Positions 21,870-55,610 of a stretch of 64,000 nucleotides of DNA are shown here, in pieces. The notes beneath the pieces are model-generated. The model searched no databases and was not told the DNA's origin. It worked only from the letters and a program-made list of their open reading frames with translations. A program made the translations under genes and the position numbers. This DNA comes from Mytilus californianus (taxonomy: Eukaryota): assembly GCF_021869535.1 (NCBI RefSeq), contig NW_026262734.1, forward strand, positions 101,680,001 through 101,744,000. Reading direction: 5' to 3'. Position 1 is the stretch's first letter. Each line of letters starts with the position of its first letter.

Positions 21870-23490
21870 AAGGAAGAGGGACAAAAGATACCACAGGGAC
21901 AGTCAAACTCAGATATCGAAAACAAACTGACAACGCCATGGCCAAAAATAAAAAGACAAACAGACAAATCATAGTACAGATGACACAACATAGAAAACCA
22001 AAGACTAAGCAACACGAACCCCACCAAAAACTGGGGGTGATCTCAGGTGTTCCGGAAGGGTAATCAGATCCTGCTCCACATGTGGCACCCGTCGTGTTGC
22101 TTATGTTATTACAATTCCGGTAAAAAGTCTAATTCGGTAAGTCACATTCGTGAAAAGGGAAGGGTATTGTAGTTACGACATAAGGAACATATCCGATATC
22201 ATCTGTGAAACGGTTATTCCATAACGGTCAACCAACTCGTGATGGCGTCCGTAAAATTTACAAAGGGATGGTTTCAACTTCACCATTTGGAACTCTTGGT
22301 TTAATAGCTTCCTTGTGAGCAGCAATCCTCTATCAAGGAAATCATGATAGGAAACACAAGCCCGGGAATATCGTATCAATTGGGAGATATATACTCCGTA
22401 TGCAGGCGCTGCTGGGATGTTGCTACATAGAAATGGAAAGTTCACAATTGGGAAGCTGAAATAATCACTTTTGTCGTAAAGTTTTGTTTTCAACCGACCC
22501 TCATTGTCAATTTCTAGATGTAAGTCTAGATATGAGGCAGACTTAACAGTATCTGTAATATCCTTTATCTCTAGTTCGATGGGATAGATTCGTTCAACAT
22601 AGTCACCAAATTTTGTATTATTTAGTGAGAAAACATCATCTATATAGCGGAACGTAGAGTTAAAGGATATTGCTAACTTCTTATCTTTCTTCCTAAGAAG
22701 TTCCTGTATGAAGTCAGCCTCATAATAATAAAGAAACAAGTCGGCAAGAAGAGGGGCACAATTGGTTCCCATTGGAATTCCGACAGTCTGTTGAAAAACA
22801 CGTCCTCCAAACGTAAGAAATATGTTGTCAATCAAGAAATCAAGCATCTTGATAATGTCAGTTTCAGAGAATTTTTTGTTTGAATCAGAGTTATTCTTTA
22901 CAAAGTAGGATTTATCCCTCCCCATGACAAGATACTTGTATCTACGTTCGCCATTCTTTTTAATGAAACAAAGTAATACCAACTCTTTCAATTTGTCTTT
23001 TAGTTTGGAATGGGGAATACTTGTGTAAAGTGTAGAAAAGTCAAATGTTTTAATACTATTGCAAGATGAGAGAGTCTTAGATTGTATGTACTCTAAAAGA
23101 TCTTTGGAATTTTTTAGTATCCACATCTGATTCACGCCACCTCTAGAATAGGCAGTTTCACAATAACTTTGGAGCCCGGCTTTGATTGCTGATAAAACAG
23201 ATATTAATAATTTAGAAAGAGGTTTCGTGGAGCACTTGGAAGACCCAGCAATATACCGTTGTTTGTAAGGAACATAGAACAGATCTATGATCTATGATTC
23301 TCCAGGATTTCCTCTTTGGTAAGTTTCGTGAGGGTATATGCTGAGTTTCCAAGTGAATTGTCAATACCTAATTCATTTATCAAGCAGTTTATGTAATAAT
23401 ATTTACACACAAAAACGATGTTGTTTGGGGCTTTATCTGCGGGGACAACATATTTTTCATGGAATTAGATCAAGTGTCTAAAGATAAGGA
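21870..23490 (-). mobile_element. 5'-truncated Penelope-like retroelement, Naiad-type (RT without C-terminal endonuclease)
   Basis: RT ORF with TFDFSTLYT, GIPMGTNCAP and FRYIDD motifs; upstream VPADKAPNNIVFVCK; 3' UTR with the AGCAACACGA/TCGTGTTGCT closing stem. The ORF stops after the thumb with no GIY-YIG domain, as expected for N-terminal-EN PLEs. Confidence 0.93.
22173..23135 (-). pseudogene. Penelope-like reverse transcriptase, 320-codon open remnant
   Basis: ORF-track protein contains RT motifs A (DFSTLYT), B (GIPMGTNCAP) and C (YIDD). The upstream part is broken by a 74-nt deletion and a 7-nt duplication near 23270-23300. Confidence 0.9.
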
Positions 23491-32508: not shown

Positions 32509-33179
32509 CTAATTCATATTGTGTTCTGTGTCTTCCTCGTTCTCTTCGTCGTCCTCAACTTCAACAATGCCAAGACATTCTCCAAACCATCTAGCAAAGG
32601 TTCTCACCTGTTCTTGCAAAAGATCAAAACACATAGCTAATAGAGTTAATCCAAAGAGCAGATAAATGGCACATATAAACTGTTTTGGTTGACTTTGCCA
32701 CGAATCTAAACTATGCCCTGGGACAACATCACCGAATCCAATAGTCGACAAGGTGATGAAACAAAAGTAAGCAGACGTTAGTATGTCCCAACTAGTTTCC
32801 CATAAATGAAAAAGCAATGTTCCAATTAGTGTATACGTTATAACGAGTAAACTGCAAACAATTATGGGCACGTGCTGCGGAGGCGGCAGAGTACGAGTAG
32901 GAATATAAACTATTAATTTGTTCTCTTCGATTATAGTGCCATCTTCACCTTTGACCTTTTCATGGCGAATAGTTGTTTGTGGAAGTGGTAAAGCATGTCC
33001 AATGCCAAAATTCCGTTTATTTCTAACGACTGGTATCCTGTTATAAAAGATCTGAAATCCTTTTCCAAGAAGGGATCCAATATTTGCTAGACACAACAAT
33101 GTCAGTGGTATTCCAAAGAATGCATATATCATTGTAACAATTCTTCCCCATGCAGTTTTAGGTGTAATGTGACCATAAC
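32509..33179 (-). CDS. Two-pore-domain potassium channel (K2P/TWIK family), coding exon 2 (end of P1, M2, M3, P2, M4, C-terminus)
   Basis: Acceptor CAG at 33182-33180; the exon starts GT TAT GGT CAC, completing TIG-YGH. Then [22 protein letters not shown] (M2), [21 protein letters not shown] (M3), [15 protein letters not shown] (P2) and [22 protein letters not shown] (M4); stop at 32511-32509. Confidence 0.97.
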
Positions 33180-35283: not shown

Positions 35284-36055
35284 AATAATATTTTTATGTT
35301 ATAAGACCACCATTTCACCCACTTCAATTTAGAACATATGTAAAAGTATTCCTTTTTTTACAAAAATGGTGCTTTTGATGTCATTGTTTACTTAAACTTA
35401 CAAACAAATTTGCAGAGATTAAACTTTTGGTGAAAGAGAAATATATATAGACCATACATATGATTTTGCATTAAACATTTAGGATTAATGCGCTCCTTAG
35501 TATATTTATTTAAGATTTTCAGAAAACCAGAGGTTATCTTTAGTTGCGCTTGACTTCCCAACGGTGGTGTTTCGATACAAGACTTTGAAAATTGTTTGAA
35601 AATTGAAATATTGAAAGGTGATACATGTACAATTCCGAATCTACCTGTTTTGTTTGAAGTTAAACTTAAGATAAAATATCTAGAAGGCTGTGAATATTGT
35701 AGAATTTGGATGATTATATAGGGGTTTGGAATTGGAGGTATGACACCTTTAACGTACGAGTGATTCCGTAAACATTAGTGGGCATCAATTTAGAGCAAAT
35801 TTATAGATCTCTGTAGTTATAACATGGTCTATTATGCACGAACAAAAAAAAACACTTGTTCCTTGGAAGAGTCGTCCTGTGTGTTTGGTTTAGTTTATAG
35901 GACTCGTGTAAACATATATGCGTATAGTTGTAGTACTTATATCAATAACACATAGCTGAGTGGGTGACATAGCAAATTGTTACCCCTCTAAAATATAAAA
36001 AAGAAAATATTTTTGTCAGTTTAAATTTGTTAACTTAATCTTGCTAATGTTTTAC

Positions 36056-36719
36056 CTATTGTTGTAATAACTGTGACTGAATATAGCAAGGATCCAGTGA
36101 AAGACCAGTGCAGCTCACCCACAGCCTCATCTGAAATGCCATCCCATCCTAGTTCTTTTGTGGCTACGTAAATTTGCTTTTCAAAAAGGCGCAAAGTATG
36201 TTCCACCTGTCCTGTCCAATTTGGCTTCTCCAAAATATTAAAACGATATGTCGCATTCCATAACTCATTTAATGTCTCCTTTCTGAGGTTTGTAGTAATT
36301 AATCTACTTTGTTTTTCATTTCCTTGTTCCAAACTTTGAAAAATAATGGCACCGAGAATTGAATATCCTATAACCAGGCATGTCAGACCTACGTGAGAAA
36401 AAAGGAATATCAGAAATTTCTTCAAAAGTACTTTCCCCTTCCTTTTAATTTGTGCTGAATTTGGAATTTCTTTTTTGCCCTTTTCTTTCTCTGTCAACGG
36501 GTTGGTGACGTCATGGGTGTCGTCAACTGCGCATAAGTTGTTGTATGACGTCAAATTTGTTCTATTTATATCATGAGCTGATATATCACTTATGATACAG
36601 GTTTCATTTGATTCCGCAATTGACATTCCCAGCTTTTCCGAATCCTTCAGATCTTGTTTTGACATATCTGTAGTAACAAATGTGTCGTTTGAAATATCAG
36701 CAGAACAATCTTTCGTCAT
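36056..36719 (-). CDS. Two-pore-domain potassium channel (K2P/TWIK family), coding exon 1 (N-terminus, M1, cap, P1)
   Basis: First in-frame ATG at 36719, 13 nt after an acceptor (TTGCAG|G, exon edge 36732). M1 FLIFLFSHVGLTCLVIGYSILGAIIFQSLE and pore helix WSFTGSLLYSVTVITTI; donor ATAG|GTAAAA at 36056/36055 (phase 1). Joined CDS is 664+671 nt = 444 aa plus stop. Confidence 0.95.
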
Positions 36720-37384
36720 TTCATCTATCAACCTGCAACAAATATCAATGATTAAACTGTTCTGTTAGATATGGAGACTAACACGTGGATGCAGCATGAA
36801 CTGACCACGTGATCACTAAAAAATACCAAGGTATACAAAATAGGATTATATCATTTAGGTTATTTTCAGATCAACTGGTCAAAATTTCCCTGTTGTTAGT
36901 ATTTATCATGTTTACGATGCTGGAAATTTTAAATATGAACATATTAATTGTCAGATGCACAGTAGTTGCTATTTAAAGTATTGAATTGGTGTAGATCATG
37001 TCTTAAGTATGGGAAATGAGAATAGTATGTCTTTTCCCATCAAAACTGACATTTCAAACTATATATCAGTAAAATCATTCAGGGATTGTGTTTTTGTTTT
37101 GTTTACCCTTAAACAATGACATTTCATAATCATTCAAATGGTCCTACCAAAGAGCGTTTAGAAATTGGACTTTGTTCTCTATTGACTGTCATACTACAAG
37201 TTTGATGGACTATACATCGACCCTTCATGCAGACCATTAAAGCCGTTTGTCTTTTTTTTTTCTTTTTGCGATAGTTTTTCATAAAATAGTCAGTGGAGAT
37301 GGATACTTTCCCATTAGACAAATGCATTTGACATTCCTCATACCCAAAATATAATAAATTAGTTTGTATCATACAGTAATAAAA

Positions 37385-50130: not shown

Positions 50131-50649
50131 GTTCAAACATTTAATTTTCTTTGTTGTCTTTTCTCCTATTAAGGTCCGGCTTTAATTTTTCCTAAAGCGA
50201 GCATAAACACGGGTTTTAAACCTTCTCTCAAATAAGCTGACTCTGCTATTTAAAAGATATTTGGGTGGAAAGTTATATTAGATCATGTTCTCTGTTTGGA
50301 TATTAGCATATTCAAGTCTTTTTTATCAAAAGATTTGTTTATCAAGGAAAACCCTTCGTAAATAAGTCATGACCAGAATTACTTTTCGGGCTGGAACCTT
50401 CATTTGCACTAAGTATTCCGATCTCCGTCGTCCTTGAGTGGATTTCTTTGTCAGGTCATGCAAACAAGCATGAAATTCTCACCCTAGGGTTTATGCATTG
50501 TGACCACTTATTGTTTTGTTTTATTTTATTTGTATCTTCTTTCTGATTTATGAGATAAGCTACCTATTAGTAAGGATAAGACACCAGAAAGTGACATTTC
50601 AATTCTATTTGTGTTGTTTTCTAGATTTTGATATCACATGCTAAAAACG

Positions 50650-52738
50650 AAATAAATGCATTCCTTAGTGAGCCTAAATCCATCAATAGGAAACACAACT
50701 TCAAAATACTGATGGATTCAGTCGAGGGTTATGCATGTTATGCCATGCAATGGGTTAAACGCGAGAAAGAAGACGTAGATACTCTTTCTGAATGGATTAA
50801 GGCTGTGCGGTCGTTGATACAAATCAGAATTAAGAAACTGAATGGGTCAATCAATACCAATGCTACGTCAATCTTTATAGACCAAAATGTTGTAAAACAC
50901 TTGTCCTACCTCCATGACAAATATGTTGTTGTTCCCGCAGACAAAGCCCCAAACAACATCGTTTTTGTGTGTAAATCACATTACGTTAACTGCTTGATAA
51001 ATGAATTAGGTATTGACAATTCACGTAGAAACCAAACATATACCCCCATGACACTTACTAAAGAGGAAATCCTGGATAATCATAGGTCTGTTCTATGTTC
51101 CTTTGTAATTTCAACCAAAGATGAAGAACTGGATCTTCCATTACTATATTGGATACCTACACTACATAAGTATCCTTACAAACAACGGTATATCGCTGGG
51201 TCTTCCAAGTGCTCCACGAAACCCTTTTCTAAATTATTAACATCAATTTTATCAGCAATCAAAGCCGGGCTTCAAAGTTATTGTGAAACTGCCTATTCCA
51301 GAGGTGGCGTGAATCAAATGTGGATACTAAATATTCCAAAGATCTTTTAGAGTACATACAATCTAAGGCTCTTTCATCTTGCAACAGTATCAAAACATTT
51401 AACTATTCTACACTTTACACAGGTATTTCCCATTCCAAACTAAAAGGCAAATTCAAAGAGTTGGTATTGCTTTGTTTCATAAAAAAGAATGGCCAACGTA
51501 AATACAAGTATCTTGTCTTAAGGAGGGATAAATCCTACTTTGTAAAAAATCACTCTGATTCAAACAAACAATTCTCTGAAACCGAAATTATCAAGATGCT
51601 TGATTTCTTGATTGACAACATATTTGTTACGTTTGGAGAACGTGTTTTTTCAACAAACTATCGCATTTCCATGGGAACCAACTGTGCCCTTCTTCTTGCT
51701 CGCCTTTATTCTTATGAGGCTGACTTAATACAGAAACTTCTTAGGAAGAAAGAAAAGAAGTTAGCAGTATCCTTTAACTTTACTTTCCGCTATATAGATG
51801 ATGTTCTCTCACTAAATAATTCAAAATTTGGTGACAATGTTGAACGTATCTATCCCATCGAACTAGAGATAAAGGATACAACAGATACAGTTGAGTCTGC
51901 TTCATGTCTTGACTTACATCTAGAAATTGACAATGAGGGTCGGTTGAAAACAAAACTTTACGACAAAAGAGATGATTTCAGCTTCCCAATTGTGAACTTT
52001 CCATTTCTATGTAGCAACATTCCCGCAGCGCCGGCATACGGAGTAAATAACTCCCAATTGATACGATATTCACAGGCTTGTAATTCCTATCATGATTTCC
52101 TTGATAGAGGATTGCTGCTCACAAGAAAGCTATTTAACCAAGAGTTCCAAATGGTGAAGTTGAAATCATCCCTTCGTAAATTTTACTGACGCTATCACGT
52201 ATCTTGTCACTGCCTATTCTAGAGATGGCGTGAATCATATGTGGATACTAAAAAATTCCAAAGATCTTTTAGAGTACATACAATCGAAGACTCTTTCATC
52301 TTGCAACAGTATTAAAACATTTGACATTTCTACACTTTACACAAGTATTTTCCATTCCAAATTAAAAGACAAGAACTTTTGGTTGACCGTTATGGAATAT
52401 CCATTTCACAGATGATAGCAGTTATGTTCCTTATGTCGTAACTACAATCCCGTTCCCTTTTCACGAATGTGACCTACCGAGTTAGACTATTTATTTGGTT
52501 TGTACTAACATGAGCAACACGACGGGTGCCACATGTGGAGCAGGATCTGCTTACCCTTCTGGAGCATCTGAGATCACCTCCAGTTTGTGGTGGGGTTCGT
52601 GTTGCTTAGTCTTTAGTTTTCTATGTTGTTTTTTGTGTACTATTGTTTGTTTGTCTTTTCTATTTTAGCCATGGCGTTGACAGTTTATTTTCGATTTATG
52701 AGTTTGAATGTCCCTCTGGTATCTTTCGCCCCTCTTTT
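50650..52738 (+). mobile_element. Longest Naiad-type Penelope-like copy (pre-RT domain, RT, 3' UTR), frameshifted
   Basis: ORFs 50628-51350 (VPADKAPNN, LYWIPTLHK, YIAGSSKCSTKP) and 51320-52189 (YIDD) overlap across a frameshift. The 3' UTR matches 21870-22170 in reverse; a ~180-bp internal insertion lies at 52200-52378. Confidence 0.93.
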
Positions 52739-53183
52739 AGATGTTCTAGAAAAGACCACTTATAAGCTATTCAAAAATAAAGATATATTGAAAAATAGGT
52801 AAAAAAATAACTAAAATATCGAACTCTATGGTAAATGCAAAAAGGGGATGTCCATAAAAACTGACACCAAACGTTGCAAACGTTGTTTTGTCATGGTGTT
52901 GTCGGTTTCTCTTCGATCTATGGATAATGATGGTCGCTTTTGTATCATCCCTCTCTTTTTATATAGCAAACTCGATATCTCGATTTGTCGACATACGGAA
53001 AATGCGACTGGCATAACAAATTATAAGTCTGGTATATTTGATGAGTTTTTTGTAACAGTCATGTGAATTAGGGAATTACAATTTCTTACAAGTAATTAAA
53101 TACAATGGATAGTTTGCGATTACAACTGTCTTCTATTGATTGTATAATTAAAGTTATATTGAATAAAAACTAGTTACTTCTTA

Positions 53184-53834
53184 TCATATAATAAACGTTG
53201 ACAAAACAAATAGTATTGAAATAAAACATAAGAGGAAGACACACTTAAAACACTTAAAATACCAATTTTCATGAACTCGGCCAACCTTGGTATGTTCATT
53301 TGATCTTGTTCGTACGATATGAGAATATTCCAAGAATGTAGAAGATCGACTTGTCTCATTAGAATATGGGTAGTCGGATGATCTAGAATAAGTTTTTAGT
53401 CCAGGGTTATACATATTCGTGCTATTTAAAGATTGATTATATATTTGGTATTGATTGTTTGCTCTTTCCTTTTTTAGCCGACGCCATGCTATTCCGCCGG
53501 CATTCCCTCGAACACGCACACACGATCCCTCGTTATACGTTGTAAACTTTATTGAATTAACTCCAAAGGTTTCATACACAGGAATGGAAGTTATCATTCC
53601 AAGTGCTTCCGCTTTTTTTGAATACCCAGAGTCTGCGATTGTCCTGTGTAAACCACTTTCCTTTCCACCAAATCACGTTTATTCTCGGAATACTCGTAAC
53701 TTTGGCTGATCCATTAATAAGATCATCTAATGTTTCTCCAATATATGTGTAACAATGGCTTGTTGACAATCCAAAAGTTTTTGAAATTGAATCCTGTGAG
53801 TAAAATAAAAAATTTCCGATGGCCTTAGATACAT
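53184..53834 (-). pseudogene. Frameshifted gene (or gene with assembly indels): N-terminal ParB/Sulfiredoxin-like DNRRL domain, low-complexity linker, C-terminal transmembrane anchor
   Basis: Acceptor TTTGTTTACAG, then ATG at 53834. Removing a 5-nt duplication (53801-53810) and one T from T7 (53613-53619) joins three ORF-track pieces into 214 aa: MYLRPSEIFYSQDSISKTFG...IGETLDDLINGSAKVTSIPRINVIWWKGKWFTQDNRRLWVFKKAEALGMITSIPVYE...CFKCVFLLCFISILFVLSTFII*. The domain identity is inferred from motif pattern only. Confidence 0.65.
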
Positions 53835-54984
53835 GTTTACTGTAAACAAAGTTAGTTTCACTTTTGGAACTTCAGAAAATACAAACATGTAACTGATAAC
53901 CGTTATCATTTTTTAAAGTTTATCAACGTGCAAATAATGTTATAAATAATCGATAATCAATTAATTCATATCAATTTCAAGCGATAGTTCTTAAGGACAT
54001 TTTTGAAGTACTGAACCTTTTCTGTTGTATTCTAATCTTTTCACAACTTTTAATTACATTTTTTTAAATTTTTTTTTTGTCGCTGAACTATCATTCATAG
54101 TCAAAATATGCTCTGGTACATCAACAATGTATAGCAAACATACCGAACTCCAAGGCGAATTCAAAAAAAGGAGAAGTCCTTAAAAACTGACAAATTCAAA
54201 CGCTATCAATCAACAGAACAAATGAAAACAACTGCCATATTTCTGATGTTTGTACATTCATTTTCCGAAGAAAATGGTGGGTTAAACCTGGTTTTAAAGC
54301 TAGCTAGGTAAACCTCCCACTTGTTCTTGCAAATGTTTTTCTGTTCAATGTGATGACATGTTGTAAGTTTCCTATTTTCTTTTACCGGTTGAAAACTGTG
54401 TCAATAACAGTGCATCATTGAAGACCTTCTAACAACTTGTTATACCCAAAAATGCGTTGTTTATTAAAAACATTGTTTATTTCCTACAGATTATTTTCTG
54501 ATGTACATCAACCCTTATATCTATATTTCAGCTTATCACCAACGATACAAAAGGATATAGAAGTAGGTCCCAGCTTCTGCTTCACGATATATAGATTCCC
54601 CATAAAGGCGACGTTTGAATTTATGTGATGTATGAATTTGCAAACGATTTTTTTTTTTATTTTGAATTAAGGTTGTAATGATAATCAACATTGTACTTAC
54701 GATCTTGGTTATGTGCACCAAAATCAATCACACAAAATATCTTTATTATTAGTTAGTATATCAAAGAAACAAAGCTTTTTTCTTATTGTTTATCTTCAAA
54801 TCTGTTCAAAGGTCATCCGATGTATTGAACTGAGAAGGAGTCATGCTCTCTTCACGTTCAACAACGCTTGCAATAACTCACCAAAATCTATTTCAAGATT
54901 TATACGTTTTTTTTATTGATTAACCTTTGTAGTACACACATATTTTATTTTGACTCATTTTGTCAAAATACTAGACTTTTTGAA

Positions 54985-55610
54985 GAATAACACAGGCATT
55001 TGACCATTTGGTGGAATAATATTTCAACAAATAATTGGATTTCAAAAAGGTGGTAAATGTGCATTCCTTCTGGTCGACTTGTTATTTGTATTTGCATGAA
55101 GCTGAATTCATTCAAAACTTTCACAAGGATCAAACGAAAGACACATCTTGACAAGTTCTTTGATTGCACGTTCAGATATGAATTCGAACGTGCTTTAAAG
55201 GTCTCCTCTATTAAACCAAAACATGTCTTGTCAGGTCAGCTTTTCATGTAACAATGAAGTAATATCTATGCATTTTGAATCTCAATCTAAATATCGCATC
55301 TCTTATTAATGTGTTTTTCTTGTTTTGAGGGTGGCCTTTATATACGGGTTTGACTACACCCAAAAACGTCACATAATGGAAACTACCGAGACTAGGAAGT
55401 CTGTTTCGTATCTGGATCTTTAGATGAATTTTAAGCAGGTGGACCACTACAAAATAGTATGTTAGGCAAAAGTGTCGATATTAATTGTACATTTTGGTTT
55501 TCTCATTTCTCAGGAGTACTATAATCTCTGCAAAAGGTATGTTGTTTACATGTCTCAGTTGATACGTTAAACGCTTGAATGTAAACATTATAACGAACTT
55601 TACTTATAGT
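54985..55610 (+). mobile_element. Very old Naiad-type RT fragment
   Basis: FGGIIFQQIIGFQKGGKCAFLLVDL...EAEFIQ parallels FGGRVFQQTVGIPMGTNCAPLLADL...EADFIQ; SVSYLDL at ~55400. Confidence 0.6.

Follow-up and report, generated by a model that had tools for sequence, protein, structure and literature searches.

Tox-ParBL1 is a divergent ParB-fold toxin domain with Neisseria gonorrhoeae NGK_2271 as its type member; it has a conserved N-terminal Ser/Thr and an [NT][RT][RT] motif, mostly NRR, is carried on Rhs, filamentous-haemagglutinin and HINT toxins, and has members in 'several metazoans' (Zhang, de Souza, Anantharaman, Iyer and Aravind 2012, Biol Direct 7:18, PMC3482391). ToxB, an ATPase toxin of CdiA proteins with the ParB-CTPase fold, was found via Pfam PF02195; mutation of its P-motif Arg abolishes ATP binding and toxicity, and a small immunity gene lies downstream of it (bioRxiv preprint 10.64898/2026.05.05.722872). 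Here we have analysed a 64,000-nucleotide stretch of the genome of the mussel Mytilus californianus (contig NW_026262734.1, positions 101,680,001 to 101,744,000; hereafter the window) and, within it, a minus-strand gene that encodes a predicted ParB/sulfiredoxin (Srx)-fold domain with a C-terminal membrane anchor. The reading that we favour, at a probability of about three in four, is that this gene is a frameshifted copy, with intact alleles elsewhere, from a domesticated, membrane-anchored family of toxin-domain proteins that are predicted to be nucleotide enzymes.

As assembled, the coding region (53834-53184) is translated in three pieces and two frames. Frame A opens at the ATG at 53834-53832 with MYLRPSEIFY and then turns to nonsense; frame B carries ...YSQDSISKTFG...TQDNRRLWVFKK (...YSQDSISKTFGLSTSHCYTYIGETLDDLINGSAKVTSIPRINVIWWKGKWFTQDNRRLWVFKK); frame A is picked up again with AEALGMITSIPV... 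(AEALGMITSIPVYETFG...) and terminates in ...CVFLLCFISILFVLSTFII, with the stop codon at 53186-53184. The last 19 residues of the protein are hydrophobic and the stop follows them directly. A putative 3' splice site (CTAAC...TTTGTTTACAG) lies 5 nucleotides upstream of the ATG and is kept in the paralogues L002 and L003. A preliminary description, made from the letters of the window, had proposed a single broken gene of 214 amino acids with a splice acceptor at this place. Intact relatives confirm both junctions, one of them (the public protein P0026) being exactly 214 amino acids long, and the putative acceptor is indeed present and conserved. The gene has a single coding exon, and the copy at this locus is frameshifted twice as assembled. 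In all of the work below the three window pieces were searched separately and never joined, and alignments and folds were made on natural, intact relatives.

Profile comparison establishes true homology between the mussel domain and the toxin domain at the C-terminus of bacterial Rhs, CdiA and PT-HINT polymorphic toxins. A tblastn search of plasmids with the domain of the paralogue L004 gave a match in Haliovirga abyssi (E 8e-7, 35% identity over 87% of the domain), with further matches in Sinorhizobium and Streptomyces (1e-4) and in Bacillus toyonensis (0.1). Each of these is the C-terminal ~105 residues of a protein with an upstream toxin-delivery module, namely an Rhs tip (RYVDPSGH; Rhs_assc_core 3e-21), a PT-TG region or a PT-HINT domain (1.6e-16). 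Directly downstream in the Haliovirga, Sinorhizobium and Bacillus loci is a gene for a DUF7660 protein of 83-84 amino acids (PF24693, E 1e-25 to 6e-28); at the Streptomyces plasmid locus no DUF7660 was recorded downstream. The mussel and bacterial profiles were aligned by hhalign with a probability of 99.4% (E 8e-22, 38% identity over 99 columns), and they have in common the motifs RFSQDSI...F, IP.I.V...G..[YF][ST].DNRRL and KFTT.N.G.S[VI].VR. In the four bacterial toxin domains DNRR is invariant, and the Ser of RFSQ is present in three, with Thr in the fourth (L040). The Gln, the Asp-Asn-Arg-Arg, the Lys, the Asn and the Arg of these motifs are invariant or nearly so across the animal and bacterial sets.

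A scan of bacterial genomes with the mussel profile and a single pattern confirmed nothing. A later pattern, built from a three-sequence bacterial alignment and run on 185,579 bacterial and archaeal genomes, yielded 38 loci in Actinomycetota, Pseudomonadota, Bacillota, Planctomycetota, Acidobacteriota, Lentisphaerota and Verrucomicrobiota, and a DUF7660-like open reading frame (ORF) lies immediately downstream in 32 of them. The long bacterial proteins carry RHS repeats and core, PT-HINT, or DUF637 with haemagglutinin repeats (CdiA type, such as L067). A C-terminal position behind a delivery module, with DUF7660 downstream, marks the domain as a polymorphic-toxin warhead with an immunity protein; since it follows the toxin domain so regularly, DUF7660 is presumed, from gene order, to be the cognate immunity protein. 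No match to the domain was obtained in phage records, and a literature search found no paper mentioning DUF7660. The bacterial result is thus an unannotated toxin domain together with its likely immunity protein, DUF7660. A quick maximum-likelihood tree groups 39 of the 40 bacterial domains in a single clade, set off by a long branch with a support of 100, and all of the bivalve sequences fall on the other side; the remaining bacterial row, L077, is itself long-branched and lies outside the bacterial clade. This topology is compatible with one old transfer.

In plasmid pHIC of H. abyssi (229557-241868; L037), the toxin-immunity cassette is part of a tandemly repeated module of ~6 kb, which also contains a RelE/ParE pair, a replication initiator, a tyrosine recombinase and a hypothetical gene, together with the toxin tip and the immunity gene. 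The array of modules lies downstream of an RHS core gene.

AlphaFold models were made for the paralogue L004 (29 sequences) and for P0025, the intact domain of the window gene (140 sequences). Both have a predicted local distance difference test (pLDDT) score above 93 over the domain, that of L004 in residues 1-120, followed by a disordered linker and a terminal helix (217-231), and that of P0025 with a mean of 93.8. In both models strands 50-55 and 58-61 form a beta-hairpin, and the helix that follows (64-75) is opened by DNRR. The start of the post-hairpin helix is the site of GERR in ParB and of GGCHR in Srx. Thus the earlier proposal that DNRR takes the place of the GxRR of ParB agrees with the position of the motif in the models.

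The proposed ParB/Srx fold itself was likewise recovered. For both models, the first ~49 places in a Foldseek search of the PDB are all taken by ParB/Srx-fold proteins (Noc, ParB, KorB, sulfiredoxin, Atu1540, SbnI and SerK), with a best E of 4e-3, probabilities up to 0.99, query template-modelling (TM) scores of 0.36-0.41 and a TM score of 0.54 to Arabidopsis Srx. VIA, which is independent of Foldseek and was run on 48,161 chains, placed ParB/Srx proteins in 10 of 10 top places (Z 7.4-3.4), unrelated chains reaching at most 3.0; the Z score was 7.4 for 2hwj (91 residues, 2.7 A), 6.7 for Srx, 6.1 for SerK and 5.7 for KorB. The ParB/Srx matches cover residues 1-107. On the evidence of these models, the N-terminal domain of ~115 residues has the ParB/Srx fold.

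By sequence similarity the gene is a member of a bivalve-wide, tandemly expanded family. A window piece has 36 matches in the M. californianus genome, which gives a family of at least 36 loci, with a tandem cluster on the same contig (C154) at 101.73-101.97 Mb and more clusters on C132, C143, C88 and C1. The intact paralogues are 214-990 amino acids long overall; those of 214-328 amino acids in a single ORF all start M-x-L-x-P-S-E-I-x-[YF]-[ST]-Q-D-S-I and carry I-G-E-T-L-D and D-N-R-R-L-W. Among 140 aligned members N64, R66, L and W are invariant and D and R65 reach at least 90%, so that DNRR is conserved in homologues, a point that the preliminary description had singled out for checking. 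The ratio of nonsynonymous to synonymous substitution rates (dN/dS) is mostly 0.2-0.35 in the domain, indicating purifying selection, and 0.4-1.0 in the tail.

Every match from a word index carries an uncharacterised protein name and lacks a Pfam domain. The relatives whose source is named come without exception from bivalves (among them Mytilus, Sinanodonta, scallops, Mya, Mercenaria, Ruditapes, Mactra, Dreissena and Magallana), and there are metagenome contigs as well. The full HMMER search returned 299 cluster representatives at E <= 1e-30 and 1403 at E <= 1e-10; the count at E <= 1e-3 (3028) was discounted, because it is inflated by the low-complexity S/T-rich tails, as spurious profile matches to PDB sequences show. 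The genes lie in contigs of more than 100 Mb, are rich in AT, recur in many bivalve genomes and end in eukaryotic fashion, with a CaaX box or a tail anchor, all of which rules out bacterial contamination. Scans of the window pieces, the intact paralogues and the bacterial toxin domains with Pfam, NCBIfam and PADLOC gave no match for the domain, a search of the ESM Atlas gave mollusc clusters only, none of them named, and a literature search on ParB/sulfiredoxin, polymorphic toxins and bivalves found no paper on the bivalve family. A characterised animal protein with this architecture, of which the preliminary description knew none, was not found here either. What that description had missed is the homology with bacterial polymorphic toxins, the very large size of the bivalve family and the CaaX anchors.

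The domain begins at residue 1 in nearly all members, without an N-terminal signal peptide. Most of the intact paralogues of the genome have a hydrophobic tail, and L009 ends in CCTIL, a CaaX box. L009 (1483-2469, plus strand), P0018, P0019 and P0021 all end in CC-x-I-L, which is a CaaX box plus an extra Cys and suggests an alternative anchor by prenylation and palmitoylation. Among 133 family representatives, 33 terminate in a transmembrane tail and another 20 in a CaaX-like box, which for the most part reads CC-x-I-L. Two such unlike anchoring devices, in the absence of a signal peptide, indicate that anchoring on the cytosolic face of a membrane matters to the family. The tail anchor that had been proposed for the window protein is supported by its hydrophobic end, by the lack of a signal peptide and by the predicted terminal helix of the paralogue model. 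Sequences and models together show a protein made up of an N-terminal ParB/Srx domain, a predicted disordered and fast-evolving linker and a C-terminal anchor, in the form of a transmembrane tail here and of CC-x-I-L elsewhere.

Some members are elaborated. A second, degenerate copy of the domain, with GNKRLW or RNLSKLW replacing DNRRLW, is present in L011 (811-1713, minus strand) and L036 (3134-3886, minus strand), followed by a conserved ...DRPWLT..DILQ.G... C-terminus that also occurs in P0047, P0048, P0052 and P0066. On C132, the members L031, L032 and L033 (G000:C132:79.21-79.41 Mb; 764-990 amino acids) have the same N-terminal domain and, after it, 650-870 amino acids of S/T/K-rich tandem repeats of ~80 amino acids; several neighbouring copies contain stops.

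The two breaks in the window copy were examined against paralogues and independent sequencing runs. When the DNA is aligned with L002, L003 and L004, three paralogues on the same chromosome, the 5-base duplication at 53801-53810 has no counterpart in any of them. Relative to the intact L003 and L004 there is one extra base in the run at 53613-53619, which the nearest paralogue, L002, also has. L002 (G000:C154:101948966-101952199) consists of ORFs 1483-1755 and 1080-1505 on the minus strand and has 76% amino-acid identity to the window copy. Its extra base is in the homologous A-run (CCAAAAAAGCGG versus CCGAAAAGCGG in intact copies), and its downstream frame of 141 codons, transmembrane tail included, is still open. 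For this extra base in L002 there are two explanations: a homopolymer error that recurs in the assembly, or a real slip that happened independently.

Run X1 (DNA, same species label) gave a 941-nucleotide contig over 53021-53967, which differs from the window by two substitutions and exactly six missing bases, one at 53613 and five at 53801. Run X5 (DNA from another study, a more divergent haplotype) lacks the extra base at 12.6 of 12.6 depth; at 53801 it has the deletion in 0 of 6.2 depth and at 53779 it agrees with the window, so that it apparently carries the duplication. From run X9 (RNA-seq, labelled mollusc metagenome, ~97% identical) came an 822-nucleotide contig with neither break, the extra base being missing in 11 of 11. 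Depth in this run stands at ~11 across the gene and drops to ~0 in the unique flanking stretches 53908-54041 and 54310-55500, which argues for real transcription of an intact form in a close relative. The extra base is therefore missing in all three data sets (7.25 of 7.25 depth in X1) and is probably an assembly error or a private variant or allele. The duplication, missing in X1 and X9 and apparently present in one of the three data sets, is probably a real, segregating null allele. Intact public proteins of the same gene exist (P0026, 214 amino acids, P0005 and P0024); the species has intact alleles of the gene, and an intact form is transcribed in a close relative. The preliminary description had suspected that the breaks might not reflect decay, which was right in part, the extra base being missing from all three read sets and the duplication seeming to segregate. 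For the genome assembly, one gene is thus flagged for two things, a homopolymer error and a real null allele, each of them probable.

Compared with described systems, the family is most readily set beside Tox-ParBL1, although by its published description only: the predicted ParB fold, the Ser, the N-R-R and the toxin contexts all agree. Among the 140 aligned members the Ser of PSEI is the only one listed at 90% or more, the consensus there being YSQDSI. The likeness in the C-terminal warhead position holds for the bacterial homologues, whereas the mussel proteins are not polymorphic toxins. The immunity partner also differs, being DUF7660 here and Imm-SUKH or Imm44 in the 2012 list, and that paper describes neither the animal architecture (N-terminal domain, disordered linker, tail anchor or CaaX) nor a bivalve expansion. 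As in ToxB, a ParB-fold domain without a helix-turn-helix (HTH) serves as a contact-dependent warhead, the L067 homologue likewise being on a CdiA-type protein; in contrast to ToxB, which is bacterial only, the present family is not detected by PF02195 and has different motifs. The free serine kinases SerK and SbnI and Atu1540 (2hwj), which use ATP in phosphotransfer, have the ParB/Srx fold in common with the domain (VIA Z 7.4 to Atu1540, 6.1 to SerK and 5.4 to SbnI), but they have extra domains, 4-13% sequence identity and no toxin association. The ParB, Noc and KorB clamps resemble the family in the fold of their N-domain, and the Arg pair (GERR versus DNRR) and an upstream Gln recall Box II and Box I; however, the family has no ParA-binding motif, has Asn for the catalytic Glu and is membrane-tethered. 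The lack of an HTH and of a dimerisation domain sets it apart from a ParB clamp, which it therefore is not; the model is disordered from residue ~130 to the terminal helix, with no Pfam domain there.

Several points weigh against the reading of the gene as a domesticated toxin-domain enzyme. The fold scores are middling: Foldseek E values run from 4e-3 only to 1e-2, all query-length TM scores are below 0.5, and VIA Z values stay below 8, in the middling range of that tool. At the sequence level, hmmscan with ParB_N (PF02195) gave no match at E <= 10 for the window pieces and four intact paralogues; against the M. californianus genome the same profile found nothing at E <= 1, sulfiredoxin included, whereas 11 of 14 control genomes were matched, and it probably misses mussel sulfiredoxin because of split exons. 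Profiles run against PDB sequences gave spurious or low-complexity matches only and reached no solved structure. The tree has bacteria and bivalves on either side of one long branch and gives no direction of transfer. DUF7660 was not found in the mussel genome, a weak negative in that the control also matched nowhere. We infer enzymatic activity for bacterial and animal members alike, and Asn at the site of the catalytic Glu of ParB would allow binding without hydrolysis, in which case the domain could be a switch only. The raw RNA reads of X21, from the same species, include about two over the gene, so that expression in the species is very low or tissue-specific. Lastly, the extra base common to the window copy and L002 could mean an inherited, real frameshift and not an assembly error.

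Some of these points would also be expected if the resemblance to ParB/Srx were a chance likeness of a small alpha/beta domain with a new fold and chemistry. This is very improbable, because two independent aligners applied to two models put ParB/Srx proteins only at the top (~49 of 49 places in Foldseek and 10 of 10 in VIA), the conserved Arg motif falls at the phosphate-binding position of the fold, and an independent published HHpred search linked the matching toxin family to 1vz0 at 93% (PMC3482391). A divergent sulfiredoxin paralogue that repairs peroxiredoxins at membranes might be thought of as well, since the best structural matches include Arabidopsis and human Srx (Z 6.7 and 5.4; target TM 0.54), and Srx is likewise a small, single-domain eukaryotic ParB/Srx-fold protein without HTH, with a nucleotide-phosphate motif at the start of what is, in the models, the same helix. 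Nevertheless, the nearest sequence relatives are bacterial toxin warheads and not Srx, and the family differs from Srx in its membrane anchor, its large number of genes and its separate bacterial origin. No member has the catalytic Cys, the invariant DNRRLW standing in the place of GGCHR (an equivalence taken from model topology), and for this reason the protein is not a sulfiredoxin, an identity that we consider almost inconceivable. A less distant alternative, which is possible but in our view doubtful, is a domain without catalysis that serves as a nucleotide-binding switch or as a module for protein binding, in other words a domesticated pseudo-toxin. The Asn just mentioned would suit it, ParB, Noc and KorB act as nucleotide-gated switches according to the titles of the matched structures, and a mussel genome with no detectable immunity gene is easier to explain if the domain is harmless. 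On the other hand, the bacterial toxin domains, which have to act on some target, show the same Q...DNRR...K...N...R without exception, and these residues are under strong purifying selection.

With regard to the breaks, both might be assembly errors, the reference animal carrying an intact gene. The X1 contig is the same as the window save for two substitutions and the six extra bases, the exact window form occurs in no indexed run (the best word share is 0.90), and the extra base of L002 in the same homopolymer would fit a systematic overcall. Yet a 5-base tandem duplication is untypical of consensus errors, and the X5 contig, at a depth of 6.2, matches the window at 53779 and 53801, so that this form seems to be real DNA; a double error is accordingly not what we expect, though it deserves some weight. 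Null alleles and presence/absence variation are common in bivalve gene families. Such variation, the stops in several other family members of this genome and the extra base that the copy has in common with L002, along with a run-lengthening G-to-A change, could be taken to mean that both breaks are real and that the copy is a decaying pseudogene or null haplotype, with the extra base inherited from the common ancestor with L002. This we judge unlikely: the extra base is missing from all three read sets, that of the near-identical X1 included, the frame downstream is open for 142 codons, and dN/dS against paralogues stays at 0.2-0.5. Moreover, intact orthologous proteins keep ...FKKAE..., and the extra base of the window thus postdates the split from L002, which makes the two events independent.

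If the gene is, as we favour, a copy of a domesticated toxin-domain family, an ancestor of bivalves may have acquired the toxin domain, which would have been domesticated and multiplied since. The domain would face the cytosol from a membrane and would use the invariant pair of Arg residues in DNRR to bind a nucleoside triphosphate, as is the case in ParB, Srx and ToxB; the nucleotide might then be hydrolysed, or its phosphate transferred, with the aid of the Gln of SQDSI and the Asp-Asn of DNRR. On the strength of the toxin link it can be proposed, in a form open to biochemical test, that nucleotide is bound and turned over through Q...DNRR. Only circumstantial points speak for a part in immunity or cell death (descent from a toxin, expansion in tandem, tails that evolve fast and a probable null allele), and a role in cell-autonomous defence is possible. 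More speculatively, and with little confidence in the whole, a captured ParB-fold NTPase warhead could have given rise to a large polymorphic family of cytosol-facing membrane effectors for defence or regulated cell death, which would, for instance, consume or modify nucleotides at the membranes of organelles or pathogen-containing compartments. Tethering and control of expression would restrain them, no immunity protein being needed, and null alleles like that of the window copy would form part of a presence/absence polymorphism under balancing selection. The membrane-anchored animal architecture of the toxin domain has not been described before and is probably a case of domestication. It makes this large animal family, which has hundreds of clusters in mussels, oysters, scallops and clams with no Pfam, NCBIfam or PADLOC model and no studied member, a clean candidate for an animal-domesticated toxin domain redeployed on the cytosolic face of membranes. 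The parts of the window gene are listed in Table 1.

Table 1. Positions in the window of the gene, its two breaks and its predicted parts
Feature	Positions	Strand	Basis
Whole coding region as assembled	53184-53834	-	Translation; aligned to intact paralogues; intact 214-aa P0026
First break: 5-base tandem duplication after codon 10 (TAAAA on plus strand, TTTTA on minus strand)	53801-53810	-	Paralogue alignment, run contigs
Second break: one extra base in 7-base A/T run, between ...LWVFKK and AEALG...	53613-53619	-	Paralogue alignment, run contigs
SQDSI motif	53785-53799	-	Q at least 90% in 140 family members, invariant in 4 bacterial toxin domains
DNRRLW motif	53626-53643	-	Starts helix 64-75 after beta-hairpin (models); conservation in 140 members
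Predicted ParB/Srx-fold domain, residues ~1-118 of intact protein, hit by both breaks	53480-53834	-	AlphaFold, Foldseek, VIA
S/N/T/Y-rich linker, predicted disordered, fast evolving	53244-53479	-	pLDDT 48-64 (L004 model); tail dN/dS
Hydrophobic C-terminal tail anchor (predicted) CVFLLCFISILFVLSTFII, stop directly after	53187-53243	-	Translation; helix 217-231 in paralogue model
Putative 3' splice site of 5'-untranslated-region intron: possible branch point CTAAC, pyrimidine tract, AG	53840-53855	-	Sequence; paralogues
Extent of 822-nucleotide RNA-seq contig (run X9, close relative; 27 substitutions, neither break)	53005-53832	-	Contig layout

The gene lies between very high-copy interspersed repeats at 52300-52970 and 54042-54309 of the window, which have a summed contig depth of 1e4-2e6 in the DNA runs and are abundant in RNA reads too. 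Retroelement ORFs for reverse transcriptase, with a ...FRYIDD... motif, were found at 50628-52189 (plus strand), just downstream of the gene, and at 22173-23135 (minus strand), where the Pfam RVT_1 match is below threshold (24.7 bits). Two large exons at 32509-33132 and 36030-36731, both on the minus strand, belong to an apparent two-pore-domain potassium channel; the first contains TIGFGD and has an Ion_trans_2 match of 1.7e-17.

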